Shown here: positions 14,656-64,000 of the stretch, one piece after another | How positions within the stretch are numbered: the first letter of the stretch is position 1 | Layout: each line of letters begins with the position of its first letter | Origin: Macrostomum lignano | Lineage: Eukaryota | Assembly: GCA_002269645.1 (NCBI GenBank) | Contig: NIVC01000857.1 | Span: 62,001 to 126,000 of the forward strand | Length of the DNA stretch: 64,000 bases | Direction: 5' to 3' | Program-made: the position numbers and the translations under genes | Notes under the pieces: model-generated | Told to the model about the DNA's origin: nothing | Seen by the model: only the letters and a program-made list of their open reading frames with translations | Database searches by the model: none

Positions 14656-15564
14656 CTGAGCTGGGGCAGAAATGGAGGTTCGAGTCTTGTCACCGCATTA
14701 GCTGTATGCTGCAGTATTCTATCGATAATTTCTCACCTCTTTCTGCTTCACGCTACTCATAGTAGGTCGAAAACCCGACTGCACCAGCATTGATCCGTCG
14801 GGGATGTTTGGCTTATCGATTTGCCAAAAACAAGCCAACTTTGTCTGAGAGCATTGTAGAAGAGTGGAAAAGAATCCGGTGCAAAGGAAGTGCAATTGAA
14901 AGCAATTCTCTCCATGGTGCAACCATAATGCAGCCTGTTATTCATGCAATGTGGCCAAGGTTTTGGGGTGAGCGCTCGTCTGGGCTTCCAGTCCAGGTGG
15001 ATGCAGTAGTCCCTGAGCCTCCACTGCCGCTTGCCAATCTTTCCGGGGCCGAGTGAAAATCAAAACAGGGAGAGATGAGCTGCTCACTCGGCTCCCCAGC
15101 ACTCAGGTTTCCCAGCCATTTGCCTACCTGCCCCCCCCCCGCGAGCTCAGCAACAATGGGGGGAGGCGAGGATCCCCAGCCTCCCCCGAGAGCACTTATC
15201 GTCTCCTTATGCAGTCTGAGCCAAACCAGAAAGAAACTTTTCTCTGCAAAAATCTTTTTTGCTCAAGAGACAAACAGCCGGCCATTGTCTCCCGGCTGCA
15301 GCGCATTTCCTGCCTGCCCGCGGCCCCGAGGCTGTTTGAGATTTCCTTCTCAGCCCCCGAGTTCGTGCTCCCCAGTCGCCTCTGGCCACGCTGTTTCAGC
15401 TGGCAGCTGCGCAGTCTGCAACTCTGGCTGAGAATTTCTCACGCTGAACTGAGGGTGAGCTGAGCCCAGCCTCCCCTGTGCTCCATCATCTTCTCTCCGG
15501 TATTGCCGCTCGAGAGCCCGTGACACTCACCGAACTGTGCCGGACTTCGTTTTACTGGGACGAA

Positions 15565-15890
15565 GTCTGCGAGCTCTCCGCGATTCTGAGGTCTCCGAGG
15601 TGCTGAGTTCTCCGAGGTGCTGAGATCTCCGAGGTGCTGAGATCTCCGAGGTGCTGAGATCTCCGAGGTTGCTGAGGTCTCCGAGATTCTGAGTTCTCCG
15701 AGGTGCTGAGATCTTCGAGGTTGCTGAGGTCTCCGAGGTTGCTGAGGTCTCCGAGGTGCTGAGATCTCCGAGGTTGCTGAGGTCTCCGAGGTGCTGAGGT
15801 CTCCGAGGTTGCTGAGGTCTCCGAGGTGCTGAGGTCTCCGAGGTGCTGAGATCTCCGAGGTGCTGAGGTCTCCGAAGTCGCTGAGGTCTG
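15565..15890. repeat. 17/20-bp minisatellite (TCTCCGAGGTGCTGAGA/G); mirror at about 62870-63180
   Basis: Direct read in both arms. Confidence 0.9.
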
Positions 15891-16708
15891 CAAGCGCGGC
15901 CTGGCAGCGCCCATGCGTCTATTTGAGGTGCCGAGCCCCGCCCGCCCCATCCTCAGCCAGGCCGGCCAACCTTCGCACGGATTGTCAGGCTGCCGCAGCT
16001 CTCCAATCCCAGAGAGCCCTGGGAGCGGGCATTGTGGGGCAGCAGGGAGACGGACAGACGGATTGGAGGGGAAGCTGCTGCTGGGACGGCCTGCTGCAGA
16101 TCTCAGTCTGGGAGGCTGGAGGCTAAAGATGAGGCAGGCAGCCGGGGAATCTGGATGTTGCGATGCAGCCACCCCCTCCCCCTTACTCAGGGCTCTCAAT
16201 GGTCCTTCATCGCAGGGGCATCCGAGTGGCGGCCCTCGTCGTCTTGTGAGCTTTAATTAAATATGCAGGCCGGGCCAACCGAGAGGCGGAGATGAGGGGG
16301 GTGGCGACTTTCGGAGATGCTGCCGCCAAAGTGCAGTGAGATGCGGAGTGCGCGGCCGCTGCTGAGGCGTCCCCGCGGGCCCGCAGCCCCCCAACCCTCA
16401 TGGGAAGAATCTGGGATCTCCACGCTCGCTGCCCGAGCACTCGAAGACAAGGAGGAGGAGGCGGCGGCGACTCCGGCCCGCGGCACCTGCCCTCGGGGCG
16501 CGCGCTTCCTCCGGGATTGCCCGCCTTCTGCCGACAGAAATTATAGATGAGTTTCTCGCCTCACTACTTGATGGGGAGCTCGGGTGTCTCCGGGGAGGAT
16601 GAGGACAGAGTGGCACCGGAATCGGAGAAAACATTCAGGAAGGCTGCCCTGCAGAGGAGGACTCCACTGGAGTATCCTAACGCTCTTAGGCTTTATCGTT
16701 TTTTGGTA

Positions 16709-16803
16709 AACCACCGGGAACCACCGGGAACCACCGGGAACCACCGGGAACCACCGGGAACCACCGGGAACCACCGGGAACCACCGGGAACCACCGGGAA
16801 ACC
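16709..16803. repeat. 10-bp repeat (AACCACCGGG) x9; mirror at about 61956-62052
   Basis: Direct read. Confidence 0.93.
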
Positions 16804-17199
16804 ACTTTCTGTGTTGAAACAACTTCAGTAATGCTGAAGCTATAGATTTATTGCTTTTCGAATCCTAACAGAAAAGCTGCAGTCATATCTGAACTTTTGG
16901 TCAATTTCGCAATTCCGCCAGTTCTCGCAGGGCAACGCCGCGCTGAAGGCAGACTGTGCCACTGCGCGACTGGCTGGCGATTCCCCGGTCGAGATGGCGG
17001 GGCCAGGCAGCTGGCTGGCTTGGCTGGGGGGGGGGGGACAAGATGCAATTTTCACTCCAGCGGAAAATGCTTTTGAGAGCTGCCTGCTAATGGGGCCCCA
17101 GGCTGTCAATCAAAAACTTCTGCTCAAGCTGTCACTTCATAGGGAGCCAAGCTTTTCATCAAAAACATTTTGGGATGCAGAGGCACTTAGGAGTGCGTT

Positions 17200-18086
17200 C
17201 CCAGATCTCCCAGATCCCAGATCTCCCAGATCCCAGATCTCCCAGATCCCAGATCTCCCAGATCCCAGATCTCCCAGATCCCAGATCTCCCAGATCCCAG
17301 ATCTCCCAGATCCCAGATCTCCCAGATCCCAGATCTCCCAGATCCCAGATCTCCCAGATCTCCCAGATCCCAGATCTCCCAGATCCCAGATCTCCCAGAT
17401 CCCAGATCTCCCAGATCCCAGATCTCCCAGATCCCAGATCTCCCAGATCCCAGATCTCCCAGATCCCAGATCTCCCAGATCCCAGATCTCCCAGATCCCA
17501 GATCTCCCAGATCCCAGATCTCCCAGATCCCAGATCTCCCAGATCCCAGATCTCCCAGATCCCAGATCTCCCAGATCCCAGATCTCCCAGATCCCAGATC
17601 TCCCAGATCCCAGATCTCCCAGATCCCAGATCTCCCAGATCCCAGATCTCCCAGATCCCAGATCTCCCAGATCCCAGATCTCCCAGATCCCAGATCTCCC
17701 AGATCCCAGATCTCCCAGATCCCAGATCTCCCAGATCCCAGATCTCCCAGATCCCAGATCTCCCAGATCCCAGATCTCCCAGATCCCAGATCTCCCAGAT
17801 CCCAGATCTCCCAGATCCCAGATCTCCCAGATCCCAGATCTCCCAGATCCCAGATCTCCCAGATCCCAGATCTCCCAGATCCCAGATCTCCCAGATCCCA
17901 GATCTCCCAGATCCCAGATCTCCCAGATCCCAGATCTCCCAGATCCCAGATCTCCCAGATCCCAGATCTCCCAGATCCCAGATCTCCCAGATCCCAGATC
18001 TCCCAGATCCCAGATCTCCCAGATCCCAGATCTCCCAGATCCCAGATCTCCCAGATCCCAGATCTCCCAAATCTCCCAGATCCCAG
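17200..18086. repeat. 16-bp minisatellite (CCCAGATCTCCCAGAT), about 55 copies
   Basis: Near-perfect array; source of the spurious PDLPDPRSPRSQISQI and GDLGSGRSGIWEIWDL ORFs. Confidence 0.97.
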
Positions 18087-18769
18087 AATAAATTATCGTG
18101 GTGATTAAATTATAATGGCAATTTTTCTCCGAAAAAATCATCGTTGCTACTATGAGTAGCCGCCACGACCCCAGACTGATCTGCAAGCCTATACAGCTGA
18201 GCAAGTGTGTTCGCTCAAGCATCGAGTCTCAAATTTCCACCCCGGAGCCACTTGTGACCGAATGAGCTTCGAATTCCAGTAAGTCCTGCGCCGCCGCTGC
18301 GGCAACAAAGGAGGCTCCGTCCGTCCGGTTTCGATTTCCCGCGGGAAAAACCGTAGCTTTTGTTTCATTTTTCATGTCTTCCTGGGTTCGAGTTCGTGTT
18401 TTTTACTGCCCCCCCCCTTCGAGCTACTTAAATTTTGAAATTTTGTCACCAACCCCCGTCCCGGTTGCAGTTCCTCTTAGCAGCTGTAAACGGTTTTGTG
18501 TCCGGCATGTATTATTCATTGATTGACGGCGGCCCGGTGGCCGAGCGAAACCCGATCCGTCCGCAGGCCGCGGCGGGCAGATCGAACTCCCGGTTGCCGG
18601 GCGGACAGCAGCGAGAGCGGAACTGCGCCCGTAATTGAGCGGCGCGAAAATGCTTGTCAGTTTAAGTGGCTGTTCGCAAACTGACGGCCTCTTGGCAGGG
18701 CGGGAGAGAGGGACAGCGGGGCAGTGGGATACGGAGAGTCACTGGTGTTGGCCTGCGTGCGAGGTCGAC

Positions 18770-19558
18770 TGGGAGTGACGTCGAGTGTGAAAGTAAGAGC
18801 GACAGTGAGAGTGAAAGTTAGTAATATTGAGTGACAACCAGACTGACAATGAGCCTGGCAGTGAGTGAAATTGAGTGACTTAGAGAGCGAGAGTGACAAT
18901 GAGAGTGAGATTGAGTGACTCTGAGAGCAATGGTGACGCTGAGTGACACCGGGAACGAGAGTGACACTTAGGGACACTGAGAGTGATAGTGACAATAAGA
19001 GTGGCAGTGAGAGCGAGAGGGACAATGAAAGTGACAGTGAGAGTGACAATAAGAGCGACAGTGAGTGACACTGAAAGCGAGAGTGAAGATGAGAGTGACA
19101 GTGAGAGTGAAAATGACAGTGACAGTGAGAGTGAAAATGACAGTGACAGTGAGAGTGAAAATGAGAGTGACAGTGAGAGTGAAAATGAGAGTGACAGTGA
19201 GAGTGACAGTGAGAGTGAAAATGACAGTGACAGTGAGACTAACAGTGAGAGTGAAAATGAGAGTGACAGAGAGAGTGACAGTGAGAGTGAAAATGAGAGT
19301 GACAGTGAGAGTGACAGTGAGAGTGAAAATGACAGTGACAGTGAGAGTGACAGTGAGAGTGACAGTGAGAGTGAAAATAAGAGTGACAGTGAGAGTGACA
19401 GTGAGAGTGAAAATGAGAGTGACAGTGAGAGTGACAGTGAGAGTGAAAATGACAGTAACAGTGAGAGTGACAGTGAGAGTGAAAATGAGAGTGACAGTGA
19501 GAGTTACAGTGAGAGTGAAAATGAGAGTGACAGTGAGAGTGACAGTGAGAGTGACAGT
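18770..19558. repeat. Hexamer-based degenerate repeat (GAGAGT/GACAGT/GAAAAT); mirror at about 59485-60260
   Basis: Direct read; source of the SESE/NESD, VRV and HSHC ORFs. Confidence 0.9.
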
Positions 19559-20119
19559 CCGGCAACAAGCACAGGAGTTGGCCGTGGGCTGGCAACAAAG
19601 CGAGGCGGTTCAGCAGCGCACAGGGAAATCGATGAAGATTTTGCAGCCTCCCCGAGTATCAAATGATCCGAGCGGAGTCCGGGTCTCGCGCCCCGCAACT
19701 CGATAATCGAATTATGAACTCCATTGTCCCCCGCCGGGCCCGCCCCGCCCCTCTTGTCTCCGCCAATTCAACTCCCCGCTTTTCCCTCTTCTCCCCGCCC
19801 GCCCAAGTATCCGGGGCCCCGGTTTGCGCAAACAATTCGGCATCTCAGTGCCCTGAGCAATGCGGCTCGGTGCTCGGCCGGACTCTGAGCTCGAATTGCG
19901 CAACCCGCGAGAAGACGGGGAGTAGGCAATAAATCACTGAGAACTCGATTGAGCTGAGCTCGCGGACTGCTATTGATGGTTTTGTGTGTCCGGCAAGTTT
20001 TACGAGCTGGGGGTGGCGATTCGGGATGAAGATGTGCCCCGATGAGGGCCCCAGACTCCGCCGAAAACAGTATTTTAAGCAAACCTTTTCTAGATAAACT
20101 GAAGGTTTGTGAATTTAGC

Positions 20120-22460
20120 TATCTCACCCCATCTATCTCGTTATCCCATGCTATTGTCTGATATCTCACTCTGTCTATCTCATTATCCCATGCTATTCTC
20201 TGATATCTCACCCCATCTATCTCGTTATCCCATGCTATTCTCTGATATCTCACTCTGTCTATCTCATTATCCCATGCTATTCTCTGGTATCTCACCCCAT
20301 CTATCTCATTATCCCATGCTATTCTCTGATATCTCACCCTGTCTATCTCATTATCCCATGCTATTCTCTGATATCTCACTCTGTCTATCTCATTATCCCA
20401 TGCTATTCTCTGATATCTCACCCCATCTATCTCATTGTCTCATGCTATTCTCTGATATCCCACTCTGTCTATCTCATTATCCCATGCTATTGTCTGATAT
20501 CTCACTCTGTCTATCTCATTATCCCATGCTATTCTCTGATATCTCACCCCATCTATCTCATTATCCCATGCTATTGTCTGATATCTCACCCTGTCTATCT
20601 CATTCTCTCATGCTATTGTCTGATATCTCACCCTGTCTATCTCATTGTCTCATGCTATTGTCTGATATCCCACTCTGTCTATCTCATTATCCCATGCTAT
20701 TGTCTGATATCTCACCCTGTCTATCTCATTGTCTCATGCTATTGTCTGATATCTCACCCTGTCTATCTCATTATCTCATGCTATTGTCTGATATCTCACC
20801 CTGTCTATCTCATTCTCTCATGCTATTGTCTGATATCTCACCCTGTCTATCTCATTGTCTCATGCTATTCTCTGATATCCCACTCTGTCTATCTCATTAT
20901 CCCATGCTATTGTCTGATATCTCACCCTGTCTATCTCATTGTCTCATGCTATTGTCTGATATCTCACCCTGTCTATCTCATTGTCTCATGCTATTGTCTG
21001 ATATCTCACCCTGTCTATCTCATTGTCTCATGCTATTGTCTGATATCTCACCCTGTCTATCTCATTGTCTCATGCTATTGTCTGATATCTCACCCTGTCT
21101 ATCTCATTATCCCATGCTATTCTTTGATATCTCACTCTGTCTATCTCATTATCCCATGCTATTCTCTGATATCTCACCCCATCTATCTCATTATCCCATG
21201 CTATTGTCTGATATCTCACCCTGTCTATCTCATTCTCTCATGCTATTGTCTGATATCTCACCCTGTCTATCTCATTGTCTCATGCTATTCTCTGATATCC
21301 CACTCTGTCTATCTCGTTATCCCATGCTATTGTCTGATATCTCACTCTGTCTATCTCATTATCCCATGCTATTCTCTGATATCTCACCCCATCTATCTCG
21401 TTATCCCATGCTATTCTCTGATATCTCACTCTGTCTATCTCATTATCCCATGCTATTCTCTGGTATCTCACCCCATCTATCTCATTATCCCATGCTATTC
21501 TCTGATATCTCACCCTGTCTATCTCATTATCCCATGCTATTCTCTGATATCTCACTCTGTCTATCTCATTATCCCATGCTATTCTCTGATATCTCACCCC
21601 ATCTATCTCATTGTCTCATGCTATTCTCTGATATCCCACTCTGTCTATCTCATTATCCCATGCTATTGTCTGATATCTCACTCTGTCTATCTCATTATCC
21701 CATGCTATTCTCTGATATCTCACCCCATCTATCTCATTATCCCATGCTATTGTCTGATATCTCACCCTGTCTATCTCATTCTCTCATGCTATTGTCTGAT
21801 ATCTCACCCTGTCTATCTCATTGTCTCATGCTATTCTCTGATATCCCACTCTGTCTATCTCATTATCCCATGCTATTGTCTGATATCTCACCCTGTCTAT
21901 CTCATTGTCTCATGCTATTGTCTGATATCTCACCCTGTCTATCTCATTATCTCATGCTATTGTCTGATATCTCACCCTGTCTATCTCATTCTCTCATGCT
22001 ATTGTCTGATATCTCACCCTGTCTATCTCATTGTCTCATGCTATTCTCTGATATCCCACTCTGTCTATCTCATTATCCCATGCTATTGTCTGATATCTCA
22101 CCCTGTCTATCTCATTGTCTCATGCTATTGTCTGATATCTCACCCTGTCTATCTCATTGTCTCATGCTATTGTCTGATATCTCACCCTGTCTATCTCATT
22201 GTCTCATGCTATTGTCTGATATCTCACCCTGTCTATCTCATTGTCTCATGCTATTGTCTGATATCTCACCCTGTCTATCTCATTATCCCATGCTATTCTT
22301 TGATATCTCACTCTGTCTATCTCATTATCCCATGCTATTGTCTGATATCTCACCCTGTCTATCTCATTGTCTCATGCTATTGTCTGATATCTCACCCTGT
22401 CTATCTTATTGTCTCATGATTTTCTCGCATATCTCACCCGTCTATCTCTGTCTCATGATA
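20120..22460. repeat. 42-bp minisatellite (CTATTGTCTGATATCTCACCCTGTCTATCTCATTATCCCATG), about 56 copies
   Basis: Direct read; 14-aa period in the 797-aa repeat ORF. Confidence 0.97.
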
Positions 22461-23843
22461 TTCTCATATAGTGTGTGGTTAATAAATACATATATAATAT
22501 AGGTATTAACTCAGCCTCCAAGCTCGCATACTCACTCCACGCCATCAATTCAACGCAGCTCCTCCATCCACTTGAATTCAATAATGGGGTTGAGGATGTC
22601 ACACAGGTGTGAATTGGGGGCGTCAGTCTGAAAAAAAAACTGCATAATTCTGATGACTGTAATTAGGAACAGAGTTCAGCCACTTAGCAGAGCCTCATGC
22701 AGCCCTGGTGCGAACTAAATATTCGATCGCTTCGAATACAATTAAGCACCCGAAATTGGAGTCACCACTGGGGCCGGGAGTGACAAACTGATTTCAGAGT
22801 TCGAAAAAGTGTTCCGACGACACGGTTCATTGCCCGCGTGTTCAATGGCATATAAAATGTGTTTCAAGGTGTCCCCAGCACGGCATGGAGTTGAATAAAG
22901 CCGCGCACTGCAGTAGGGTTCGGGTCTGAGCGGTTGCGCAACACTGGAAGAAGAGACTGGCATTCGAGACAGATGAGGACTTGCTGTGGCACGCAGCCCC
23001 AGGGAAGCCTTCAATAGTCTGTTGCAATAAACACATTTTTTCGATCTTTCTGATCTTTATTTAAAAAATTCCTATTATAAACAGTGGGAAGTGGCGCACT
23101 GTGATCGGTCAGTGTTTGTTGCAACAGTCCACGGGTCTTGCAAGCGTGAGGCGGAGTTTCTAAATAAATAAGTAGCTGGCATCTCTGCCAAGCATTCCGC
23201 CGTAGTTGTAGTCTTTTTTGTGAACCAGTAGAAGGAAAGTTGGCTGCATAAACTTGCGTGTTTCAATTCTATAACTCTTTGCTTTGGCATTCTTTTACAC
23301 ACCTGATCCTCCGAGAGGTCTGAGCGAGCTGGCCAGGAGGGGGGGCATTTAATTTACAACACACTCAAAGTCACAACAACAGACAGGCGGGCAGTTCTGA
23401 CTGGCAAAACGGACCGGCGGCAAATTTTGGAACAATTAAAAAGGGGGTTGGCCAGAGCTGTGAGCAGCAAACTCTCAGTCCCAATCTCAACTCGAGTTTT
23501 ATTGTGTGCGGCGAGCCCGCATGCGAGGCCGGCCCGACTCTCGGTGGAGCAGCTGACCTGCCTGAGGGGGTGAATGGCGGCGGCAAACTTCTTGAGGCGG
23601 AGGGTGGGGTGGGGCGCCGGAGCCCGCGGATTGGTCGAGGATAAGTGGGGGGCGGCAGGCCACAGCTCGGTGAGGAATAAAGTGCGGCACGCATTCGCAG
23701 ACCAGCAGCATTGGGGCCAAACACAGACAGGCCGCTGCAGTGAAAGTCGCTGCTAGACTCGAATACTCGGATCGAGGACTGACTGACGGACAGGCGCATC
23801 CGGGCTGCAGGTTCGCACAGCAGGGAGCAAGGAGTCTGCCGCA

Positions 23844-30357: not shown

Positions 30358-33300
30358 ATGGACAGCCTGAAGTACCTGTGGCAGTGGTCCGCTCCCTCGG
30401 CCAGGGGAGCCGCTGAACTTCCCGGATCTGCCGAGGCCGCCGCCGCCTCCCAGTTTCTCAGCGCCGCGGCCGCCGGCGGCGGCGCAGGCGGCGGCGCAGG
30501 CGGCGGTTGCGGAGGCGGCAGCGGCGGCGGCGGGTCGCACGCGACTGCGATGGGCTACCACCGGGCCTGCCTGTACCCGCCGGGCCCGGGGCCCTCGCCC
30601 TACTGCCCCTACCCGTCGCCCTCCCAGGCCAGCTCGTTCTACGAGGACGTGTACATGCGGGCCAAGGGCGGCAAGGGAAAGGGTGAGTCTCCTCCGAGCT
30701 GCTCCCCGGGGGTGTCGCGTGCTGGTCTGGATGCTGAGCATTTCACAGGGCCCTGCCTCGCATCCGTGGCCCCGGCTCTTTGCCTTGTTTTCTAGCTGCA
30801 GATTTCCCAAAAGGCTGGGGAGCTGATCGCCTCTCATTGCTGTTTCTGGCGAATTCAATCGCTGAATTTTTCATGTACCTGAGACTCAGCTTCATCAGCT
30901 TCATTACAAAACAAAAAGCCGCAGTCTGCCAGGCTCCCTTGGGACCGGTAAAAAATTCATTGCTTTATGCTCATAGGTGATCTGGGACAAATTGGCGGAG
31001 CACCCGATCGCTGAATTATGCAGCACCGACTTTCCCTCACCATTTTATTGCCGAAAGTTTTTTCTTAAAAAAATTCAAACATCTGCTGAGAGCCGTCGCG
31101 GCGCTTATTTGTCCCCCCCCTTGATGGCGCTGGCACCTCCCTTAATTGGCTGGGACGCCTCGCTTTGTCAGATCTGTTTCTCTGATTTTGATTGTTTTAT
31201 TGCTGTGCTGTCTGAGTTCATTGCTTGGTGGCTCTCATGTTGGCACTGCTGCAGAGCGGGCTGCGCTCTCTGCGTGTCTTACGGAGTTTTTGGCCTCTTC
31301 CGCTGAATAATTAATCGGCTCTGCAGCCGGGGAGTCCCAGATCCTGACCAGCGCTGGTGAGATCGCAGCAGATCACTTTCGGAAGCAGGGCAAGAATTAA
31401 TGAATTTGTATTGGGGCTGGCAGGCGGGTTCTCACGCCAAGTTCATTATTTGTAAATGCAATATTTTTTGCACTGGCTAATTTGCACTGGCTAACTGGCT
31501 GAAATCGCAGGGCCAAGCCAGGCGGAAGTCAGGGGCGGGGAGTTGCGTATGCAAATTCGTTTGCGCAAGCGCAGAGACACGGGGGCGGAGAAAGTGAGAG
31601 AAACTCAGTCCTGTCAGCCACTTCAGCCGCTGGGCAGCCAGAACTGCTGTGGTTGGAAATGAACAACACCAACACTTCACTCAGCGGCCACCACTCATGA
31701 GAAGGCGCGCAGCTTCATCTCCAGTCTCCCTCTTCTTGTGCTTCATCGCGCCGACTCCGGCATCCTGCAGCAGCCGCCCCCCCCGCGGCGAAGCCTCAAA
31801 GAAGCCGCCGCCACGCCGCTGTCCCTTTGTGCGCGCCGGGGGGGGGCGGCCTCTCAGATCCACTCTTCTTTTCTTGTTGCCCAATTGCGCTAATTTAATT
31901 GCGTTACAAGTTGCAAGAAAAGTGATTTACGTCTCGTTACCCTCTGAGCAGCCACTCCGGGCCCGGCTCCCCATTCTCCATCGGCCCCAAATGCACATGC
32001 GTTTCCTGGAATGAGAGCCGTCCCTAACCCAGTTAAGTCCATGCCGGGACCTCCCTATAGCGCTCGCTAATCAAGAGGGGCTGATTTGGGGGGGGGTCAC
32101 GGCTCCGGGCGTATAAAATACGGAATTTCCGTGGCGTGGCTTTATTGCGTCCGCCAGCCCAGCTTCCTGGCCGCATCGGCATATATTGCTCAGGCCTGAG
32201 ATCCTCTCGCTTCTCCTTGGCTGGGGTTTTCCTCGCTTTGCAAGTGCGAATTCGCAGACTCGCGCCCGGCATAGCAGATGGACAGCGGCGGCAGCGGCCG
32301 CGGCAAAGGCGGAAACCCGCAGGAGTCCCTGCTGCGGTTGCACCTTCTTGGCATGTACCTGAAGAACATCGGTGAGCAGCATCATGGAGCTTCCATGGCC
32401 CTCAGAGATCTGAATAGCGCTCCCAGTGGCGCTCCCAGTGGCGCTCCCAGTGGCGCTCCCAGTGGCGCTCCCAGTGGCGCTCCTAGTGGCGCTCCCAGTG
32501 GCGCTCCTAGTGGCGCTCCCAGTGGCGCTCTCAGTGGCGCTCCCAGTGGCGCTCTCAGTGGCGCTCCCAGTGGCGCTCTCAGTGGCGCTCTCAGTGGCGC
32601 TCTCAGTGGCGCTCCCAGTGGCGCTCCCAGTGGCGCTCTCAGTGGCGCTCCAAGTGGCGCTCCCAGTGGCGCTCCCAGTGGCGCTCCCTGTGGTATTTAA
32701 AAAGGCGCTCCTGGGATCACTTCAAATGGCGCTCCCAAAAGAGCTACCACTGGCGCTTCTAATGGCGCTTCTAATGGCGCTTCTAGTGGCGCTTCTGATG
32801 GCGCTTCTTATGACGCTTCTAATGGCGCTTGTAATGGCGCTTTTAATGGCGCTTCTAATGGCGCTTCTAGTGGCGCTTCTAGTGGCGCTTCTAGTGGCGC
32901 TTCTAATGGCGCTTCCAATAGCCTTATAAGCAAGAATAACTTCCATGCCCCTTCATTGGTGACCCCAACGCCACTCTTGTTCGACCCCGCAGGCCACGGC
33001 GGCATCAACCAGCTGGGCGGAGCCTTCGTGAACGGCCGCCCGCTGCCTGACTTCACCCGCAACCAGATTGTCGAACTGGCGCAGCGCGGCGTCCGGCCCT
33101 GCGACATCAGCCGGCGGCTCCGCGTCAGCCACGGCTGCGTGTCGAAGATTCTCGGCCGGTTCTACGAGACCGGCAGCATCCGGCCTGGCGTCATCGGCGG
33201 CTCCAAGCCGAAGGTGGCCACCCCCTCGGTGGTGGACGCCATCTGCAAGTACAAGGCCGACAATCCCACCATGTTCGCCTGGGAGATCCGCGACATGCTG

Positions 33301-33608: not shown

Positions 33609-33644
<36 letters not shown>

Positions 33645-38972: not shown

Positions 38973-38984
38973 CTGCGTGTGGGT

Positions 38985-43691: not shown

Positions 43692-46600
43692 TCAGCAGTG
43701 GCCTTCGTTTGCGACAGCGGCAGGTGCTGAGGGGTAATAGTACTGCGGGTCTGCGGGAGGATCGGGCTTGATTTAATTTCATTCGAATTTGCGATGCTTG
43801 CCTACTGATAGTAGGCTGTCGTGAAAGTGGCGTTTTGGGTGCTTTGTTAAATAAAATAATGAGATTTTAAAATGAATTAAAGCTCCCTATATCGATAACT
43901 TCTGAATTTTCTTAGAAACCCCCGGATGAATCTCCAACCTGAAGTTTCCGGAACCCCTGGATGAATCCCCAACCTGAAGTTTCCGGAACCTCTGGATGAA
44001 TCCCCAAACTGAAGTTTCCGGAACCCCGGATGAATCCCCAACCTGAAGTTTCCGGAACCCCGGATGAATCCCCAACCTGAAGTTTCCGGAACCCCGGATG
44101 AATCTCCCGTATGAATCCCAGTTGAAACAATGTCCTAAAGCCCCGTGGGATCCCGACAAACCAACCCCCTGAACCTGGCGAGGCTCCCTCAGCACTCACT
44201 CATCCTGGTGTGCGCGCCGTAGGCGGACTGCAGAAACCAGGAGGAGGCGGCGGTGGCATCTTGGTGAGCGCCGTAGTGCTGGCTGGCGTAGTGCTGGCTG
44301 GCGTAGCCTTGATAGGCGGCGGCTGCCGCGTACTCCGCAGCGTAGCTGGCGGCGGCTCCGTACTGGTGCGCTGCCGGCAGTCCGTAATGCGCTCGGAACT
44401 CGTCCAGCTTCGGACTGTCCGACTCCAGATGCAGCGCCGGCTGCTGCGGCGGCTGAGGAGGCGGTGGCTGTTGCTGATGCTGCGGCGGCGGCTGCTGAGG
44501 CGGCTGGTGAGGCTGAAGCGACTGCGGCTCGGTTGCCAAGTGGTTGCTATGGCCGTGATAGCCCCCGGCGTGCCGGATGCCAGCGGAGGCCGGGTAGAAC
44601 TGCGGCTCCTGCGGCGGGATGCCGTAGGCCGCCGCCGCTGCCGCCGCCGCTGCCGCCGCCTGCTGGGCGCTGAGTGCAGGCAGAAGTCCGGGGTTCGAGC
44701 CCGGAATTGGCGACTCCACTTTGATCCGCTTGGACGGTGACAGCCACTGGATTGTGAAAGAGGTTGGAATTTCTATTCAATGAGTCACTCGGCCATGGGA
44801 ATGCTTTGTATTCCTTGGAAACATAAATCAAATATGCTCACCTCTAGGCGATCCGGTGGCGACTGGCGGTGGCACTGCTGCTCCTTGGTGGCGTCTGAAA
44901 TGAATGGAAGGCCGGGTTGCAGGCCCTGGTAAAGATTCTAGCTGGTAAAGATTCTAGCTGGTAAAGATTCTAGCTGGTAAAGATTCTAGCTGGTAAAGAT
45001 TCTAGCTGGTAAAGATTCTAGCTGGTAAAGATTCTAGCTGGTAAAGATTCTAGCTGGTAAAGATTCTAGCTGGTAAAGATTCTAGCTGGTAAAGATTCTA
45101 GCTGGTAAAGATTCTAGCTGGTAAAGATTCTAGCTGGTAAAGATTCTAGCTGGTAAAGATTCTAGCTGGTAAAGATTCTAGCTGGTAAAGATTCTAGCTG
45201 GTAAAGATTCTAGCTGGTAAAGATTCTAGCTGGTAAAGATTCTAGCTGGTAAAGATTCTAGCTGGTAAAGATTCTAGCTGGTAAAGATTCTAGCTGGTAA
45301 AGATTCTAGCTGGTAAAGATTGGAGCTGGTAAATATTCTAGCTGGTAAAGATTCTAGCTGGTAAAGATTCTAGCTGGTAAAGATTCTAGCTGGTAAAGAT
45401 TCTAGCTGGTAAAGATTCTAGCTGGTAAAGATTGGAGCTGGTAAAGATTCTAGCTGGTAAAGATTCTAGCTGGTAAAGATTCTAGCTGGTAAAGATTCGA
45501 GCTGGTAAAGATTCGAGCTGGTAAAGATTCTAGCTGGTAAAGATTCGAGCTGGTAAAGATTCGAGCTGGTAAAGATTCGAGCTGGTAAAGATTCGAGCTG
45601 GTAAAGATTCGAGCTGGTAAAGATTGGAGCTGGTAAAGATTCGAGCTGGTAAAGATTGGAGCTGGTAAAGATTCGAGCTGGTAAAGATTCGAGCTGGTAA
45701 AGATTCGAGCTGGTAAAGATTCGAGCTGGTAAAGATTGGAGCTGGTAAAGATTCGAGCTGGTAAAGATTCGAGCTGGTAAAGATTCGAGCTGGTAAAGAT
45801 TCGAGCTGGTAAAGATTCGAGCTGGTAAAGATTGGAGCTGGTAAAGATTGGAGCTGGTAAAGATTCTACAATAGCTGGTAAAGATTCGAGCTGGTAAAGA
45901 TTCGAGCTGGTAAAGTTTCGAGCTGGTAAAGATTCGAGCTGGTAAAGATTCGAGCTGGTAAAGATTCGAGCTGGTAAAGATTCGAGCTGGTAAAGATTCG
46001 AGCTGGTAAAGATTCGAGCTGGTAAAGATTCGAGCTGGTAAAGATTCGAGCTGGTAAAGATTCGAGCTGGTAATGATTGGAGCTGGTAAAGATTCGAGCT
46101 GGTAATGATTGGAGCTGGTAAAGATGCGAGCTGGTAAAGATTCGAGCTGGTAAAGATTCTAGCTGGTAAAGATTCGAGCTGGTAAAGATTCGAGCTGGTA
46201 AAGATTCGAGCTGGTAAAGATTCTAGCTGGTAAAGATTCGAGCTGGTAAAGATTGGAGCTGGTAAATATTCGAGCTGGTAAAGATTCGAGCTGGTAAAGT
46301 TTCGAGCTGGTAAAGATTCGAGCTGGTAAAGATTCGAGCTGGTAAAGATTCGAGCTGGTAAAGATTCGAGCTGGTAAAGATTCGAGCTGGTAAAGATTCG
46401 AGCTGGTAAAGATTCGAGCTGGTAAAGATTCGAGCTGGTAAAGTTTCGAGCTGGTAAAGATTCGAGCTGGTAAAGATTCGAGCTGGTAAAGATTCGAGCT
46501 GGTAAAGATTGGAGCTGGTAAAGATTGGAGCTGGTAAAGATTCGAGCTGGTAAAGATTCGAGCTTGAGAAACGCCACAGAAATCAAAGCAGCTCACCCGG

Positions 46601-46760
46601 GTCATTCAAGTGCTGCATCTGCATGTGTCGGCGTTTCCTCTGCTGCTGTTGCTGCTGCTGCTGCAGGCTGTTCTGATTCTCATCCGACAGGGCGCCGTTG
46701 CTGACGGAAGAGCTTCCCGGCGAAGAGTCACCGGCCAGCAGCAGCTGCTGGTGCTGACTC

Positions 46761-46796
<36 letters not shown>

Positions 46797-49700
46797 TGCT
46801 GTTGCTGTTGCTGCTGCTGGCCGTCTTTGGCAGTGGCCGCGGAGTTCAGACCGCCCAGCAGCCCCTTGATGGTGTAGGCCGCGTGGCTCGACAGCAGCAA
46901 GCCCTGATGGGAGCCGGCGCTGCTGCTGGCGGCCTGCTGAGGTGGCGGCTGCTGCTGCTGCTCCCGCCCATCGCAGCTGGGCGCGCGGCCCTCGTCCTCG
47001 TCATCTCCGGACTGGCCGCCCCGCTCGGCCGCCTTGTTCCGCACGATGCGGTTGATGGAGGACACGGAGGGCACGGTGTCCTGCGAGCAGACGCCCTCGG
47101 ACAGCAGCATGTCGCGGATCTCCCAGGCGAACATGGTGGGATTGTCGGCCTTGTACTTGCAGATGGCGTCCACCACCGAGGGGGTGGCCACCTTCGGCTT
47201 GGAGCCGCCGATGACGCCAGGCCGGATGCTGCCGGTCTCGTAGAACCGGCCGAGAATCTTCGACACGCAGCCGTGGCTGACGCGGAGCCGCCGGCTGATG
47301 TCGCAGGGCCGGACGCCGCGCTGCGCCAGTTCGACAATCTGGTTGCGGGTGAAGTCAGGCAGCGGGCGGCCGTTCACGAAGGCTCCGCCCAGCTGGTTGA
47401 TGCCGCCGTGGCCTGCGGGGTCGAACAAGAGTGGCGTTGGGGTCACCAATGAAGGGGCATGGAAGTTATTCTTGCTTATAAGGCTATTGGAAGCGCCATT
47501 AGAAGCGCCACTAGAAGCGCCACTAGAAGCGCCATTAGAAGCGCCATTAAAAGCGCCATTACAAGCGCCATTAGAAGCGTCATAAGAAGCGCCATCAGAA
47601 GCGCCACTAGAAGCGCCATTAGAAGCGCCATTAGAAGCGCCAGTGGTAGCTCTTTTGGGAGCGCCATTTGAAGTGATCCCAGGAGCGCCTTTTTAAATAC
47701 CACAGGGAGCGCCACTGGGAGCGCCACTGGGAGCGCCACTTGGAGCGCCACTGAGAGCGCCACTGGGAGCGCCACTGGGAGCGCCACTGAGAGCGCCACT
47801 GAGAGCGCCACTGAGAGCGCCACTGGGAGCGCCACTGAGAGCGCCACTGGGAGCGCCACTGAGAGCGCCACTGGGAGCGCCACTAGGAGCGCCACTGGGA
47901 GCGCCACTAGGAGCGCCACTGGGAGCGCCACTGGGAGCGCCACTGGGAGCGCCACTGGGAGCGCCACTGGGAGCGCTATTCAGATCTCTGAGGGCCATGG
48001 AAGCTCCATGATGCTGCTCACCGATGTTCTTCAGGTACATGCCAAGAAGGTGCAACCGCAGCAGGGACTCCTGCGGGTTTCCGCCTTTGCCGCGGCCGCT
48101 GCCGCCGCTGTCCATCTGCTATGCCGGGCGCGAGTCTGCGAATTCGCACTTGCAAAGCGAGGAAAACCCCAGCCAAGGAGAAGCGAGAGGATCTCAGGCC
48201 TGAGCAATATATGCCGATGCGGCCAGGAAGCTGGGCTGGCGGACGCAATAAAGCCACGCCACGGAAATTCCGTATTTTATACGCCCGGAGCCGTGACCCC
48301 CCCCCAAATCAGCCCCTCTTGATTAGCGAGCGCTATAGGGAGGTCCCGGCATGGACTTAACTGGGTTAGGGACGGCTCTCATTCCAGGAAACGCATGTGC
48401 ATTTGGGGCCGATGGGAGAATGGGGAGCCGGGCCCGGAGTGGCTGCTCAGAGGGTAACGAGACGTAAATCACTTTTCTTGCAACTTGTAACGCAATTAAA
48501 TTAGCGCAATTGGGCAACAAGAAAAGAAGAGTGGATCTGAGAGGCCGCCCCCCCCCCGGCGCGCACAAAGGGACAGCGGCGTGGCGGCGGCTTCTTTGAG
48601 GCTTCGCCGCGGGGGGGGGGGCGGCTGCTGCAGGATGCCGGAGTCGGCGCGATGAAGCACAAGAAGAGGGAGACTGGAGATGAAGCTGCGCGCCTTCTCA
48701 TGAGTGGTGGCCGCTGAGTGAAGTGTTGGTGTTGTTCATTTCCAACCACAGCAGTTCTGGCTGCCCAGCGGCTGAAGTGGCTGACAGGACTGAGTTTCTC
48801 TCACTTTCTCCGCCCCCGTGTCTCTGCGCTTGCGCAAACGAATTTGCATACGCAACTCCCCGCCCCTGACTTCCGCCTGGCTTGGCCCTGCGATTTCAGC
48901 CAGTTAGCCAGTGCAAATTAGCCAGTGCAAAAAATATTGCATTTACAAATAATGAACTTGGCGTGAGAACCCGCCTGCCAGCCCCAATACAAATTCATTA
49001 ATTCTTGCCCTGCTTCCGAAAGTGATCTGCTGCGATCTCACCAGCGCTGGTCAGGATCTGGGACTCCCCGGCTGCAGAGCCGATTAATTATTCAGCGGAA
49101 GAGGCCAAAAACTCCGTAAGACACGCAGAGAGCGCAGCCCGCTCTGCAGCAGTGCCAACATGAGAGCCACCAAGCAATGAACTCAGACAGCACAGCAATA
49201 AAACAATCAAAATCAGAGAAACAGATCTGACAAAGCGAGGCGTCCCAGCCAATTAAGGGAGGTGCCAGCGCCATCAAGGGGGGGGACAAATAAGCGCCGC
49301 GACGGCTCTCAGCAGATGTTTGAATTTTTTTAAGAAAAAACTTTCGGCAATAAAATGGTGAGGGAAAGTCGGTGCTGCATAATTCAGCGATCGGGTGCTC
49401 CGCCAATTTGTCCCAGATCACCTATGAGCATGAAGCAATGAATTTTTACCTATCCCAAGGGAGCCTGGGAGACTGCGGCTTTTTGTTTTGCAGCGAAGCT
49501 GATGAAGCTGAGTCTCAGGTAGCTGGCGGGTTAAGCCATGAAAAATTCAGCGATTGAATTCGCCAGAAACAGCAATGAGAGGCGATCAGTTCCCCAGCCT
49601 TTTGGGAAATCTGCAGCTAGGAAACAAATCAAAGAGCCGGGGCCGTGGATGCGAGGCAGGGCCCTGTGAAATGCTCAGCATCCAGACCAGCACGCGACAC

Positions 49701-53000: not shown

Positions 53001-53119
53001 CCGCATTCTGGTGGGACTTGTTTGACTTGGGGGGGGGGGCGAGACGAACTCGAGTCGTGCGGCCTTTGATTGTTTGGCGTGCTCGGGGCGGTGAACGGGC
53101 AGAGATTTTCAGGCTCACC

Positions 53120-57711: not shown

Positions 57712-58925
57712 TGAGAATATCATGAGACAGAGATAGACGGGTGAGATATGCGAGAAAATCATGAGACAATAAGATAGACAGGGTGAGATATCAGACAATA
57801 GCATGAGACAATGAGATAGACAGGGTGAGATATCAGACAATAGCATGGGATAATGAGATAGACAGAGTGAGATATCAAAGAATAGCATGGGATAATGAGA
57901 TAGACAGGGTGAGATATCAGACAATAGCATGAGACAATGAGATAGACAGGGTGAGATATCAGACAATAGCATGAGACAATGAGATAGACAGGGTGAGATA
58001 TCAGACAATAGCATGAGACAATGAGATAGACAGGGTGAGATATCAGACAATAGCATGAGACAATGAGATAGACAGGGTGAGATATCAGACAATAGCATGG
58101 GATAATGAGATAGACAGAGTGGGATATCAGAGAATAGCATGAGACAATGAGATAGACAGGGTGAGATATCAGACAATAGCATGAGAGAATGAGATAGACA
58201 GGGTGAGATATCAGACAATAGCATGAGATAATGAGATAGACAGGGTGAGATATCAGACAATAGCATGAGACAATGAGATGACAGGGTGAGATATCAGACA
58301 ATAGCATGGGATAATGAGATAGACAGAGTGGGATATCAGAGAATAGCATGAGACAATGAGATAGACAGGGTGAGATATCAGACAATAGCATGAGAGAATG
58401 AGATAGACAGGGTGAGATATCAGACAATAGCATGGGATAATGAGATAGATGGGGTGAGATATCAGAGAATAGCATGGGATAATGAGATAGACAGAGTGAG
58501 ATATCAGACAATAGCATGGGATAATGAGATAGACAGAGTGAGATATCAGACAATAGCATGGGATAATGAGATAGACAGAGTGGGATATCAGAGAATAGCA
58601 TGAGACAATGAGATAGATGGGGTGAGATATCAGAGAATAGCATGGGATAATGAGATAGACAGAGTGAGATATCAGAGAATAGCATGGGATAATGAGATAG
58701 ACAGGGTGAGATATCAGAGAATAGCATGGGATAATGAGATAGATGGGGTGAGATACCAGAGAATAGCATGGGATAATGAGATAGACAGAGTGAGATATCA
58801 GAGAATAGCATGGGATAACGAGATAGATGGGGTGAGATATCAGAGAATAGCATGGGATAATGAGATAGACAGAGTGAGATATCAGACAATAGCATGGGAT
58901 AACGAGATAGATGGGGTGAGATAGC
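57712..58925. repeat. 42-bp minisatellite, about 29 copies (mirror of 20120-22460, half as long)
   Basis: Direct read. Confidence 0.97.
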
Positions 58926-60954: not shown

Positions 60955-61562
60955 TCTGGGATCTGGGAGATTTGGGAGATCTGGGATCTGGGAGATCTGG
61001 GATCTGGGAGATCTGGGATCTGGGAGATCTGGGATCTGGGAGATCTGGGATCTGGGAGATCTGGGATCTGGGAGATCTGGGATCTGGGAGATCTGGGATC
61101 TGGGAGATCTGGGATCTGGGAGATCTGGGATCTGGGAGATCTGGGATCTGGGAGATCTGGGATCTGGGAGATCTGGGATCTGGGAGATCTGGGATCTGGG
61201 AGATCTGGGATCTGGGAGATCTGGGATCTGGGAGATCTGGGATCTGGGAGATCTGGGATCTGGGAGATCTGGGATCTGGGAGATCTGGGATCTGGGAGAT
61301 CTGGGATCTGGGAGATCTGGGATCTGGGAGATCTGGGATCTGGGAGATCTGGGATCTGGGAGATCTGGGATCTGGGAGATCTGGGATCTGGGAGATCTGG
61401 GATCTGGGAGATCTGGGATCTGGGAGATCTGGGATCTGGGAGATCTGGGATCTGGGAGATCTGGGATCTGGGAGATCTGGGATCTGGGAGATCTGGGATC
61501 TGGGAGATCTGGGATCTGGGAGATCTGGGATCTGGGAGATCTGGGATCTGGGAGATCTGGGA
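60955..61562. repeat. 16-bp minisatellite (ATCTGGGAGATCTGGG), about 38 copies (mirror of 17200-18086)
   Basis: Direct read. Confidence 0.97.
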
Positions 61563-64000
61563 ACGCACTCCTAAGTGCCTCTGCATCCCAAAATGTTTTT
61601 GATGAAAAGCTTGGCTCCCTATGAAGTGACAGCTTGAGCAGAAGTTTTTGATTGACAGCCTGGGGCCCCATTAGCAGGCAGCTCTCAAAAGCATTTTCCG
61701 CTGGAGTGAAAATTGCATCTTGTCCCCCCCCCCCAGCCAAGCCAGCCAGCTGCCTGGCCCCGCCATCTCGACCGGGGAATCGCCAGCCAGTCGCGCAGTG
61801 GCACAGTCTGCCTTCAGCGCGGCGTTGCCCTGCGAGAACTGGCGGAATTGCGAAATTGACCAAAAGTTCAGATATGACTGCAGCTTTTCTGTTAGGATTC
61901 GAAAAGCAATAAATCTATAGCTTCAGCATTACTGAAGTTGTTTCAACACAGAAAGTGGTTTCCCGGTGGTTCCCGGTGGTTCCCGGTGGTTCCCGGTGGT
62001 TCCCGGTGGTTCCCGGTGGTTCCCGGTGGTTCCCGGTGGTTCCCGGTGGTTTACCAAAAAACGATAAAGCCTAAGAGCGTTAGGATACTCCAGTGGAGTC
62101 CTCCTCTGCAGGGCAGCCTTCCTGAATGTTTTCTCCGATTCCGGTGCCACTCTGTCCTCATCCTCCCCGGAGACACCCGAGCTCCCCATCAAGTAGTGAG
62201 GCGAGAAACTCATCTATAATTTCTGTCGGCAGAAGGCGGGCAATCCCGGAGGAAGCGCGCGCCCGAGGGCAGGTGCCGCGGGCCGGAGTCGCCGCCGCCT
62301 CCTCCTCCTTGTCTTCGAGTGCTCGGGCAGCGAGCGTGGAGATCCCAGATTCTTCCCATGAGGGTTGGGGGGCTGCGGGCCCGCGGGGACGCCTCAGCAG
62401 CGGCCGCGCACTCCGCATCTCACTGCACTTTGGCGGCAGCATCTCCGAAAGTCGCCACCCCCCTCATCTCCGCCTCTCGGTTGGCCCGGCCTGCATATTT
62501 AATTAAAGCTCACAAGACGACGAGGGTCGCCACTCGGATGCCCCTGCGATGAAGGACCATTGAGAGCCCTGAGTAAGGGGGAGGGGGTGGCTGCATCGCA
62601 ACATCCAGATTCCCCGGCTGCCTGCCTCATCTTTAGCCTCCAGCCTCCCAGACTGAGATCTGCAGCAGGCCGTCCCAGCAGCAGCTTTCCCTCCAATCCG
62701 TCTGTCCGTCTCCCTGCTGCCCCACAATGCCCGCTCCCAGGGCTCTCTGGGATTGGAGAGCTGCGGCAGCCTGACAATCCGTGCGAAGGTTGGCCGGCCT
62801 GGCTGAGGATGGGGCGGGCGGGGCTCGGCACCTCAAATAGACGCATGGGCGCTGCCAGGCCGCGCTTGCAGACCTCAGCGACTTCGGAGACCTCAGCACC
62901 TCGGAGATCTCAGCACCTCGGAGACCTCAGCACCTCGGAGACCTCAGCAACCTCGGAGACCTCAGCACCTCGGAGACCTCAGCAACCTCGGAGATCTCAG
63001 CACCTCGGAGACCTCAGCAACCTCGGAGACCTCAGCAACCTCGGAGATCTCAGCACCTCGGAGAACTCAGAATCTCGGAGACCTCAGCAACCTCGGAGAT
63101 CTCAGCACCTCGGAGATCTCAGCACCTCGGAGATCTCAGCACCTCGGAGAACTCAGCACCTCGGAGACCTCAGAATCGCGGAGAGCTCGCAGACTTCGTC
63201 CCAGTAAAACGAAGTCCGGCACAGTTCGGTGAGTGTCACGGGCTCTCGAGCGGCAATACCGGAGAGAAGATGATGGAGCACAGGGGAGGCTGGGCTCAGC
63301 TCACCCTCAGTTCAGCGTGAGAAATTCTCAGCCAGAGTTGCAGACTGCGCAGCTGCCAGCTGAAACAGCGTGGCCAGAGGCGACTGGGGAGCACGAACTC
63401 GGGGGCTGAGAAGGAAATCTCAAACAGCCTCGGGGCCGCGGGCAGGCAGGAAATGCGCTGCAGCCGGGAGACAATGGCCGGCTGTTTGTCTCTTGAGCAA
63501 AAAAGATTTTTGCAGAGAAAAGTTTCTTTCTGGTTTGGCTCAGACTGCATAAGGAGACGATAAGTGCTCTCGGGGAGGCTGGGGATCCTCGCCTCCCCCC
63601 ATTGTTGCTGAGCTCGCGGGGGGGGGCAGGTAGGCAAATGGCTGGGAAACCTGAGTGCTGGGGAGCCGAGTGAGCAGCTCATCTCTCCCTGTTTTGATTT
63701 TCACTCGGCCCCGGAAAGATTGGCAAGCGGCAGTGGAGGCTCAGGGACTACTGCATCCACCTGGACTGGAAGCCCAGACGAGCGCTCACCCCAAAACCTT
63801 GGCCACATTGCATGAATAACAGGCTGCATTATGGTTGCACCATGGAGAGAATTGCTTTCAATTGCACTTCCTTTGCACCGGATTCTTTTCCACTCTTCTA
63901 CAATGCTCTCAGACAAAGTTGGCTTGTTTTTGGCAAATCGATAAGCCAAACATCCCCGACGGATCAATGCTGGTGCAGTCGGGTTTTCGACCTACTATGA

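Follow-up and report, generated by a model that had tools for sequence, protein, structure and literature searches.

The question raised by this locus is whether the genome of Macrostomum lignano carries a giant palindrome with the genes of two developmental regulators, Pax2/5/8 and GATA1/2/3, in duplicate, or whether this arrangement originated during genome assembly. The arrangement is found in a stretch of 64,000 nucleotides, here called the window, which corresponds to positions 62001-126000 of NIVC01000857.1 in the assembly Mlig_3_7. An earlier note on this DNA had offered two readings, a true palindrome and two haplotypes or homeologs of one locus joined head-to-head across a gap. A real palindrome would mean that two key developmental transcription factors are doubled and would hint at unusual chromosome mechanics in a neopolyploid. 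In a literature search no paper describing palindromes in M. lignano was found.

Background of the assembly

Mlig_3_7 was built from PacBio reads assembled with Canu, polished with Pilon and scaffolded with SSPACE v3 from paired-end as well as mate-pair reads, and 63.95% of its bases were rated error-free by REAPR (PMC5730564). Three subgenomes have been described in M. lignano, S, L1 and L2: S is carried by the small chromosomes, and the large chromosome exists in two variants, one with L1 and one with L2; the inbred DV1 line has three diverged versions of most loci. Three-copy paralogous blocks matching S, L1 and L2 constitute 69.6% of Mlig_3_7. The published divergence is 1.39% (k-mers) or 1.91% (SNPs) between L1 and L2 and 1.58% (k-mers) or 2.41% (SNPs) between L and S. 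Moreover, k-mer analysis showed that chimeric S/L scaffolds make up 36% of the assembly length (PMC10733133).

Extent and gene content of the mirrored structure

The inverted recurrence of 14757-39400 claimed in the earlier note was reproduced by BLASTN and MAFFT. The stretch 14757-39400 matches 64000-40798 in inverted orientation over 22,432 aligned columns with 98.6% identity, and in the BLASTN comparison of 1-39400 with 39816-64000 all HSPs (547/547) were on the minus strand and none on the plus strand. The inverted repeat is far beyond chance. In the MAFFT alignment of 14757-39400 with the reverse complement of 39816-64000, 22,121 columns match and 311 carry a substitution (1.39%), with a further 101 indel events that add up to 3,965 bp. 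The left limit proposed earlier was revised: 14757 is no true boundary but the mirror of the window end, because the window stops at 64000.

This became apparent from a further stretch of the same scaffold past the window (L002), in which positions 13212-22502 are identical (100%) to window 64000-54710 and sequence further out, including glutaminase and UMPS, aligns with window 971-14495 at 94-97.4%. The mirror extends at least 13 kb past the window end, and copy A is mirrored from at least 971. The inverted glutaminase copy that had been predicted beyond the window end is found there at about 0.7-3.2 kb, followed by ENaC and UMPS. No outer boundary was seen, with homology reaching the window start on one side and continuing on the other.

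Pfam matches were obtained for OMPdecase, ASC (DEG/ENaC), Glutaminase with Ank, PAX and GATA (Table 1). In copy A the genes follow each other as UMPS (3' exon), ENaC, glutaminase, a gene model of 541 aa, Pax2/5/8 and GATA1/2/3 (3' part). The proposed orientation, with Pax and GATA pointing toward each other in each arm and the two GATA copies away from each other, holds. For the glutaminase ORF, two BOX15 M. lignano proteins with 100% identity were found. The Pax2/5/8 exon, which is identical in the right arm, holds the whole paired domain (32992-33381) and the octapeptide YTIKGLLG. The Pax and GATA proteins of the window have no NCBI annotation, and a protein database search gave ML2/UniProt fragments only (P0008, P0241, P0281), with P0241 having no contig on record. 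The 541/563/560-aa gene model starts at 23844 with a first coding exon of just 8 nt, ATGCTGCG, followed by GT, after which no convincing ORFs were found. Rfam and tRNA scans of the window gave no matches.

Table 1. Features of the window (positions in window coordinates; array copy numbers are given as left versus right arm).
Feature	Position	Strand	Basis or remark
UMPS 3' exon, OMP decarboxylase domain, left copy	950-1573	+	Pfam
Contig/copy A, left arm	971-39400	+	BLASTN and MAFFT (14757-39400); 971-14495 against L002; L003 = NIVC01000857.1:63636-85887
DEG/ENaC (ASC) channel exons, left copy	4835-8508	-	Pfam
Glutaminase, left copy, A type, BOX15_Mlig006689g1	11633-13887	+	Pfam
32-mer array, first switch of nearest relative	14168-14653	.	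left: B close to C; right: A close to B
42-mer array with right flank, second switch of nearest relative	20120-23015	.	left: A close to B; from 23015: A close to C
42-mer array	20120-22448 and 57730-58923		55.5 versus 28.5 copies; 1,134 bp difference
16-mer array			55 versus 37 copies; 281 bp difference
55-mer array			9.8 versus 6.5 copies; 165 bp difference
23-mer array			16.9 versus 10.4 copies
14-mer array			29.7 versus 39.4 copies
Pax2/5/8 paired-domain exon, left copy	32956-33822	+	PF00292, E 5e-67
GATA C-terminal zinc-finger exon, left copy	38799-38993	-	
Scaffolder gap, 415 N, estimated length	39401-39815	.	sole N run of the window; sole link between the arms
Inner 982 bp of contig/copy B, without left counterpart	39816-40797	+	GATA first exon, 13-bp array and N-finger exon
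GATA first exon, right arm	first ATG 39844, open to about 40086	+	
13-bp array, right arm	40127-40486		
GATA N-finger exon, right arm	about 40591-40752	+	two +1 frameshifts relative to ML2 model P0241
Contig/copy B, right arm, reverse complement of 14757-39400	40798-64000	-	BLASTN, MAFFT; runs on beyond the window end
GATA C-terminal zinc-finger exon, right copy, intact	41334-41531	+	PF00320, E 4e-16
Pax2/5/8 paired-domain exon, right copy	46583-47449	-	

The gap between the arms

No sequence spans the centre. The arms are separate contigs on either side of the 415 N, and instead of one continuous sequenced molecule with both arms and the centre there is the N run of an SSPACE join. Both contigs terminate in repeats: contig A ends in a 14-bp minisatellite (38987-39399, unit GAGTGACGGACTGT) placed between both zinc-finger exons of the minus-strand GATA gene, and contig B in a (GGC AGC)n tract that precedes the first ATG of the plus-strand GATA exon by 28 nt. 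The gap is flanked by the same gene in opposite directions and 982 bp out of register, and the two sides are therefore neither continuous nor in frame. The right arm approaches the gap 982 bp nearer than the left arm, an offset exceeding what a 415-bp gap could hold. No inner boundary or spacer of the mirror was seen; homology enters the gap from both sides.

The consensus is poor at both contig ends. The left GATA C-finger exon departs from the right copy solely by indels of 1-2 nt, which break the frame, and in 37757-38757 the arms differ by 14 small indels versus 3 substitutions. The exons of Pax and GATA close to the contig ends contain frameshifts that are probably errors of the consensus. 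A complete GATA coding sequence is possibly present in the right contig, with the in-frame ATG at 39844 as true start. Truncation of GATA by the gap in both arms had been considered as an argument against a functional palindrome, and it was dropped because this ATG may be the true start.

These observations bear on the possibility that one M. lignano chromosome carries a real inverted duplication with arms of 38 kb or more and the GATA genes head-to-head at its centre, which we regard as unlikely. The lack of an assembled centre would then be due to the difficulty of assembling long inverted repeats, the 415-N gap suggests that the scaffolder had enough pairs to join the ends in this orientation, and with a complete GATA coding sequence in the right contig a divergent gene pair is conceivable. 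However, the assembly shows no continuity across the centre, and the offset between the arms and the missing inner boundary or spacer also speak against it.

Differences between the arms

The 311 substitutions show a Ts/Tv of 1.61, which indicates that they are real variants, and they are grouped in blocks of 2-7% divergence. The large indels are copy-number differences of tandem arrays, of which five are listed in Table 1. The earlier claim that real substitutions and array copy numbers distinguish the arms was borne out, as were the amino acid differences in Pax, which trace to 35826 (G/A) and 36050 (A/G) in the Pax C-terminal exon. Two runs are free of substitutions between the arms, 16232-23015 (6.8 kb) and 30966-33961 (3.0 kb); such runs are expected from gene conversion between the arms of a real palindrome and could have been produced in that way. 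At 1.39%, the divergence of the arms is at the level of the subgenomes (published 1.39-2.41%); known large palindromes, with their nearly identical arms, are far below it.

It is very improbable that one haplotype was assembled twice through PacBio read errors (homotype false duplication), with the arm differences being sequencing noise. The differences near the gap, almost all of which are small indels, and the 10 kb of the arms that are substitution-free would agree with such an origin, but the number of substitutions, their Ts/Tv and their clustering would not. It is in part refuted by the glutaminases, as both the A-type and the B-type amino acid differences recur in the independent ML2 gene set. 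Furthermore, one arm matches a third copy of the locus at most informative sites, an agreement not expected from random error.

Three copies of the locus and their mosaic relationships

The locus is present three times in Mlig_3_7, as copies A and B on NIVC01000857.1 and as copy C within the 1.55-Mb scaffold NIVC01000020.1. Exactly three glutaminases are annotated in this assembly, Mlig006689g1 (A), Mlig006689g2 (B) and Mlig026033g1 (C), and the independent ML2-based UniProt set also contains three, whose diagnostic residues pair P0362 with A, P0364 with B and P0363 with C. Locus copies and subgenomes are equal in number (3 versus 3). The glutaminase counts of the two assemblies argue against an extra copy per haploid subgenome, although a copy may have collapsed or been lost, and three copies are not strictly at odds with two in cis and one collapsed or lost. 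A real palindrome is disfavoured by two independent assemblies that contain only as many locus copies as there are subgenomes.

The pairwise divergence among A, B and C is 1.4-2.8%. At three-way informative sites the odd copy is A in 4-14 kb (about 185 sites; B about 42, C about 45), C in 14-23 kb (152 sites versus 6 and 3) and B in 23-25 kb (42 sites versus 7 and 11). As the odd copy differs by block, the arms are sisters in one block only, 14-23 kb. B groups with C in 4-14 kb and A with C in 23-25 kb, and along most of the length that can be compared, copy C is nearer to one of the arms than the arms are to each other. The switches of the nearest relative are located at two tandem arrays (Table 1); position 23015 is the first arm-to-arm substitution after the 6.8-kb substitution-free run. 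The grouping of one arm with C in 4-14 kb and 23-25 kb argues against a real palindrome. A real inverted duplication spanning 76 kb or more on one M. lignano chromosome would have arisen after the whole-genome duplication, would exchange sequence with the other subgenome copies and would carry two divergently transcribed GATA1/2/3 genes at its centre and two Pax2/5/8 genes, a scenario that we consider unlikely. If true, a neopolyploid animal would have a young autosomal palindrome that contains two developmental regulators.

Origin of the palindromic arrangement

The separate contigs, the three copies with their mosaic relationships, the subgenome-level divergence and the poor contig-end consensus observed here point to a false duplication by chimeric scaffolding, an assembly artefact in which two of the three subgenome copies were joined head-to-head across a gap, with a probability of roughly 85%. 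Of the two readings offered in the earlier note, the joining of haplotypes or homeologs is favoured and the true palindrome is not: the giant palindrome carrying the cassette twice is unsupported, with an uncrossed centre, exactly as many copies as subgenomes and an arm that is often nearer to copy C. The high rate of chimeric scaffolds documented for Mlig_3_7 further weakens the case for a palindrome.

The following sequence of events would explain the arrangement. Canu would have assembled the UMPS-ENaC-GLS-Pax-GATA locus three times, as A, B and C, with copy A forming the end of a long contig and copy B a separate contig. Both contigs would have broken within the repeat-rich GATA gene, and SSPACE would have linked their free ends head-to-head and written an estimated gap of 415 N, resulting in what looks like a palindrome of 76 kb or more. 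A and B would be derived from different chromosomes or homologues, and their join would be based on spurious read-pair links.

An SSPACE join requires several concordant read pairs. By our own reasoning, FR pairs that are cross-mapped between homologous contigs would have the wrong strand combination for a head-to-head link, and another source of pairs must therefore be assumed, e.g., same-strand artefact pairs or a mis-set library orientation. Cross-mapped FR pairs, RF pairs and short-insert contaminant pairs were considered as sources of the misjoin and rejected: to connect the contigs head-to-head, pairs of the same-strand (FF) type would be required. Repeats in plus/plus orientation shared by the contig ends, a possible trap for the scaffolder, were not detected by BLASTN at E <= 1e-10.

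Comparison with similar systems

In Adineta vaga, palindromes were present in the draft assembly AV13 and none was recovered in the chromosome-level assembly AV20, which was attributed to erroneous scaffolding of phased haplotypes (PMC8494291). In analogy, two diverged copies of a locus are inverted on one draft scaffold here, in a genome whose haplotypes or ohnologues were assembled separately. In contrast to A. vaga, M. lignano is a neopolyploid that reproduces sexually and has three subgenomes, and the artefact, which in A. vaga was checked by AV20, is deduced here.

A gap between duplicates on the same scaffold, as found here, is listed as a hallmark of false heterotype duplications (PMC9516828). 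As in the false heterotype duplications of the VGP, the copies appear as paralogues on one scaffold, separated by a gap and with haplotype-level divergence (PMC9516828), and gene models are duplicated, with glutaminase g1 and g2 sharing one scaffold. The present case differs in that the copies perhaps represent homeologous subgenomes rather than diploid alleles and are inverted rather than in tandem. The closest parallel within the same assembly is provided by the three-copy blocks and chimeric scaffolds of Mlig_3_7, which share with this locus the three copies and a similar divergence (1.4-2.8% here, with mosaic relationships; published SNP divergence 1.9-2.4%; PMC10733133), whereas head-to-head joins are not specifically described there.

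The ampliconic palindromes of the human Y chromosome have mirror-image arms of tens of kb with genes in two copies. In true large palindromes the centre is read through, spacer and outer boundaries are defined and the arms are homogenised to near identity. The mirror in NIVC01000857.1 resembles the human Y palindromes in the size of its arms and in containing genes twice. It differs from them by the absence of read-through and of a boundary, by its 1.39% divergence and by arms that are not consistently each other's closest relatives.

Implications for the use of the M. lignano reference

For the design of transgenesis, RNAi and CRISPR experiments and for gene-family counts, NIVC01000857.1 should be treated as chimeric at 101,401-101,815, and frameshifts that lie close to the contig ends in exons of Pax and GATA should be regarded by users of this reference as probable errors of the consensus. 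The locus provides a worked example of how Mlig_3_7 places two subgenome copies on one scaffold and thereby inflates the apparent local gene copy number, with the glutaminase models g1 and g2, the Pax genes and the GATA genes being doubled on one scaffold.

Extent of the inverted repeat

The inverted repeat is real as sequence. BLASTN of 1-39400 against 39816-64000 returned 547 HSPs, all 547 on the minus strand, and aligning 14757-39400 globally to the reverse-complemented 39816-64000 left 311 substitutions (1.39%) and 101 indel events beside 22,121 identical columns; the large indels are differences in the copy number of minisatellite arrays. Substitutions between the arms are clustered and show a Ts/Tv ratio of 1.61; 16232-23015 and 30966-33961 are free of them and 23-31 kb diverges by 2-7%. 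The limit of the arm at 14757, as set in the earlier note, simply mirrors the point at which the window stops. Past that end the predicted inverted glutaminase, followed by ENaC and UMPS, was found in L002, a stretch of the same scaffold that matches window 64000-54710 at 100% and aligns beyond it to window 971-14495 at 94-97.4%. The mirror covers at least 76 kb, more than had been proposed.

Pfam confirmed the genes OMPdecase (UMPS), ASC (DEG/ENaC), Glutaminase with Ank, PAX and GATA, and the order across the centre is forward Pax, reverse GATA, forward GATA, reverse Pax. Pax2/5/8 and GATA1/2/3 lie next to each other in convergent orientation, with about 2.5 kb between their 3' ends, and the paired domain of Pax2/5/8 lies entirely in a single intron-free exon. 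Introns and intergenic DNA are very dense in minisatellite and microsatellite arrays (44 TRF rows of score >=200 in window 1-64000, among them (TAAC)130), with copy numbers up to two-fold apart between subgenome copies.

Table. Coordinates and arm-to-arm comparison of features (window positions unless stated; L001 is a retrieved stretch of NIVC01000020.1)
Feature	Left arm or window	Right arm	Observation
Pax2/5/8	32956-36214 (+)	43700-47449	
GATA1/2/3	38500-39000 (-)	39816-41900	
Gene model without Pfam hit	23844 onward (+)	from 56289 (-)	copy C: L001 21172
ENaC model	4835-9524 (-)	L002 3569-14326 (-)	762 aa left, 809 aa right
N run	39401-39815		415 letters
42-mer array			55.5 copies left, 28.5 right
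16-mer array			55 vs 37 copies between arms
55-mer array			9.8 vs 6.5 copies between arms
23-mer array			16.9 vs 10.4 copies between arms
14-mer array			29.7 vs 39.4 copies between arms
Example arrays	2942-3716, 10466-10986, 17199-18073, 20120-22448, 33841-35478		
Block 4-14 kb			A-odd ~185, B-odd ~42, C-odd ~45 sites; B-C 0.1-1.9%, A-B 1-9% (mostly 1-5%)
Block 14-23 kb			A-odd 6, B-odd 3, C-odd 152 sites; A-B 0-0.7%
Block 23-25 kb			A-odd 7, B-odd 42, C-odd 11 sites; A-C 0.5-1.3%, A-B 2.2-2.7%
Nearest-relative switches	14168-14653; 20120-22448 up to 23015		at or beside tandem arrays

The gap and the contig ends

The sole connection between both flanks is the N run, the only one within the window. 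A 14-bp minisatellite (38987-39399), which sits between both zinc-finger exons of the minus-strand GATA gene, reaches its left edge; on its right the sequence resumes in a (GGC AGC)n repeat, 28 nt ahead of the first ATG (39844) of the plus-strand GATA exon. The flanks thus represent a single gene, once in each orientation and broken at points that do not correspond, and are neither continuous nor in frame; of the two arms, the right one comes nearer to the gap, by 982 bp. Mlig_3_7 was assembled with Canu from PacBio reads of the inbred DV1 line, polished with Pilon and scaffolded by SSPACE v3 with paired-end and mate-pair libraries from Illumina and 454 sequencing, and REAPR rated 63.95% of its bases as error-free (PMC5730564). 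Given this scaffolding and its odd length, the N run is a gap of estimated size that the scaffolder placed between two contigs from Canu, and each arm is one separate contig. Both contigs terminate in repeats, places where assemblies typically break off, not the boundaries of a palindrome.

In the final 1-2 kb left of the gap the arms differ almost exclusively by small indels, with 14 indels vs 3 substitutions in 37757-38757 and eight indels of 1-2 nt and 0 substitutions between the left GATA C-finger exon (38560-39030) and its right copy. The right GATA N-finger exon (40591-40752) is shifted by +1 at two points when compared with the ML2 protein model (...PLWRRDGGGHYLC), and 1 nt is deleted at 35837 in the left Pax C-terminal exon. 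This pattern is the signature of a poorly polished PacBio consensus, and the frameshifting 1-2 nt indels in conserved exons near contig ends are probably consensus errors rather than pseudogenes.

Three copies of the locus

Two Macrostomum lignano proteins with BOX15 locus tags match the glutaminase ORF at 100% identity; they are located on NIVC01000857.1 (163,141 bp) and NIVC01000020.1 (1.55 Mb) of GCA_002269645.1 (Mlig_3_7), and the stretch retrieved from the former (L003, 63636-85887) is the left glutaminase. Together, L002 and L003 place the window at 62001-126000 of NIVC01000857.1. Glutaminase genes of this type number exactly three in the Mlig_3_7 annotation, Mlig006689g1 (copy A, left arm), Mlig006689g2 (copy B, right arm) and Mlig026033g1 (copy C, scaffold 20). 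The independent ML2-based UniProt gene set likewise holds three, and diagnostic residues pair them one-to-one (P0362, A type; P0364, B type; P0363, C type). Three-copy paralogous blocks make up 69.6% of Mlig_3_7 and represent the subgenomes S (small chromosomes), L1 and L2 (diverged variants of the large chromosome), with divergences of 1.39% by k-mers and 1.91% by SNPs for L1-L2 and of 1.58% and 2.41% for L-S (PMC10733133). Three annotated copies with three ML2 counterparts therefore indicate three real sequence types, the number expected for S, L1 and L2. The apparent palindrome is two of these types; under a true duplication in cis one would expect a fourth copy.

In a three-way alignment of A (window 971-25418), B (L002) and C (L001), scored for the odd copy at informative sites, the odd copy changes by block, so that the arms are sister copies in one block only; within the compared 4-25 kb, one arm is closer to the copy on another scaffold everywhere outside 14-23 kb. 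The mosaic is the pattern expected of recombining or assembler-switched subgenome haplotypes and not of duplication of a single copy; it suggests that the contigs themselves may switch between subgenomes. That the second arm is purely a duplicate created by sequencing errors is rejected as extremely improbable, since the variants are transition-biased and blockwise, are common to copy C and are present in ML2.

Annotation of the locus

Neither Pax2/5/8 nor GATA1/2/3 was found among NCBI BOX15 proteins, so both seem unannotated in Mlig_3_7. The gene annotated from 23844 starts with a coding exon of 8 nt (ATGCTGCG followed by GTGAGT), and its products comprise 541, 563 and 560 aa in A, B and C. 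It lies in the 23-32 kb stretch, where arm-to-arm divergence is highest (2-7%); as no convincing long ORF was found in 23-32 kb, this model looks doubtful. The ENaC annotation is inconsistent between the arms, the right model crossing the glutaminase gene on the opposite strand. In the acidic C-terminal tail, the glutaminase model of copy C is short of 29 residues that A and B have (protein alignment columns 598-629) and that P0363 also possesses; either the contig carries an in-frame deletion or the annotation differs.

Origin of the head-to-head arrangement

The best explanation, to which we assign a probability of about 0.85, is a head-to-head linkage by SSPACE of two among the three subgenome copies. 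Each of these two contigs ends inside the repeat-rich GATA gene, and SSPACE would have joined both GATA-internal ends, with artefactual same-strand pairs, or a problem of library orientation, assumed as the source of the false links. An exact precedent for such chimeric joining of arms is given by the palindromes of the Adineta vaga draft AV13, which were no longer present once the assembly reached chromosome level and were put down to phased haplotypes having been scaffolded erroneously (PMC8494291). Among the listed hallmarks of false heterotype duplications is a gap that separates the duplicates on a single scaffold (PMC9516828), and the published analysis of Mlig_3_7 placed 36% of its length in chimeric scaffolds, a figure that refers to S/L chimerism (PMC10733133). 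A real palindrome, the first reading of the earlier note, is unlikely. In its favour, cross-mapped pairs of the ordinary kind should, as we reason, fail to yield a head-to-head orientation, and the long substitution-free blocks between the arms also speak for it; it finds no support in a join made by the N run only, in three copies of the locus and in arms that are sisters in one block. The same gap, copy number and mosaic support the alternative offered there, of homeologs or haplotypes joined across a gap. With SSPACE linkage of two subgenome copies as the preferred reading, the practical value of the finding is a warning flag on scaffold NIVC01000857.1.
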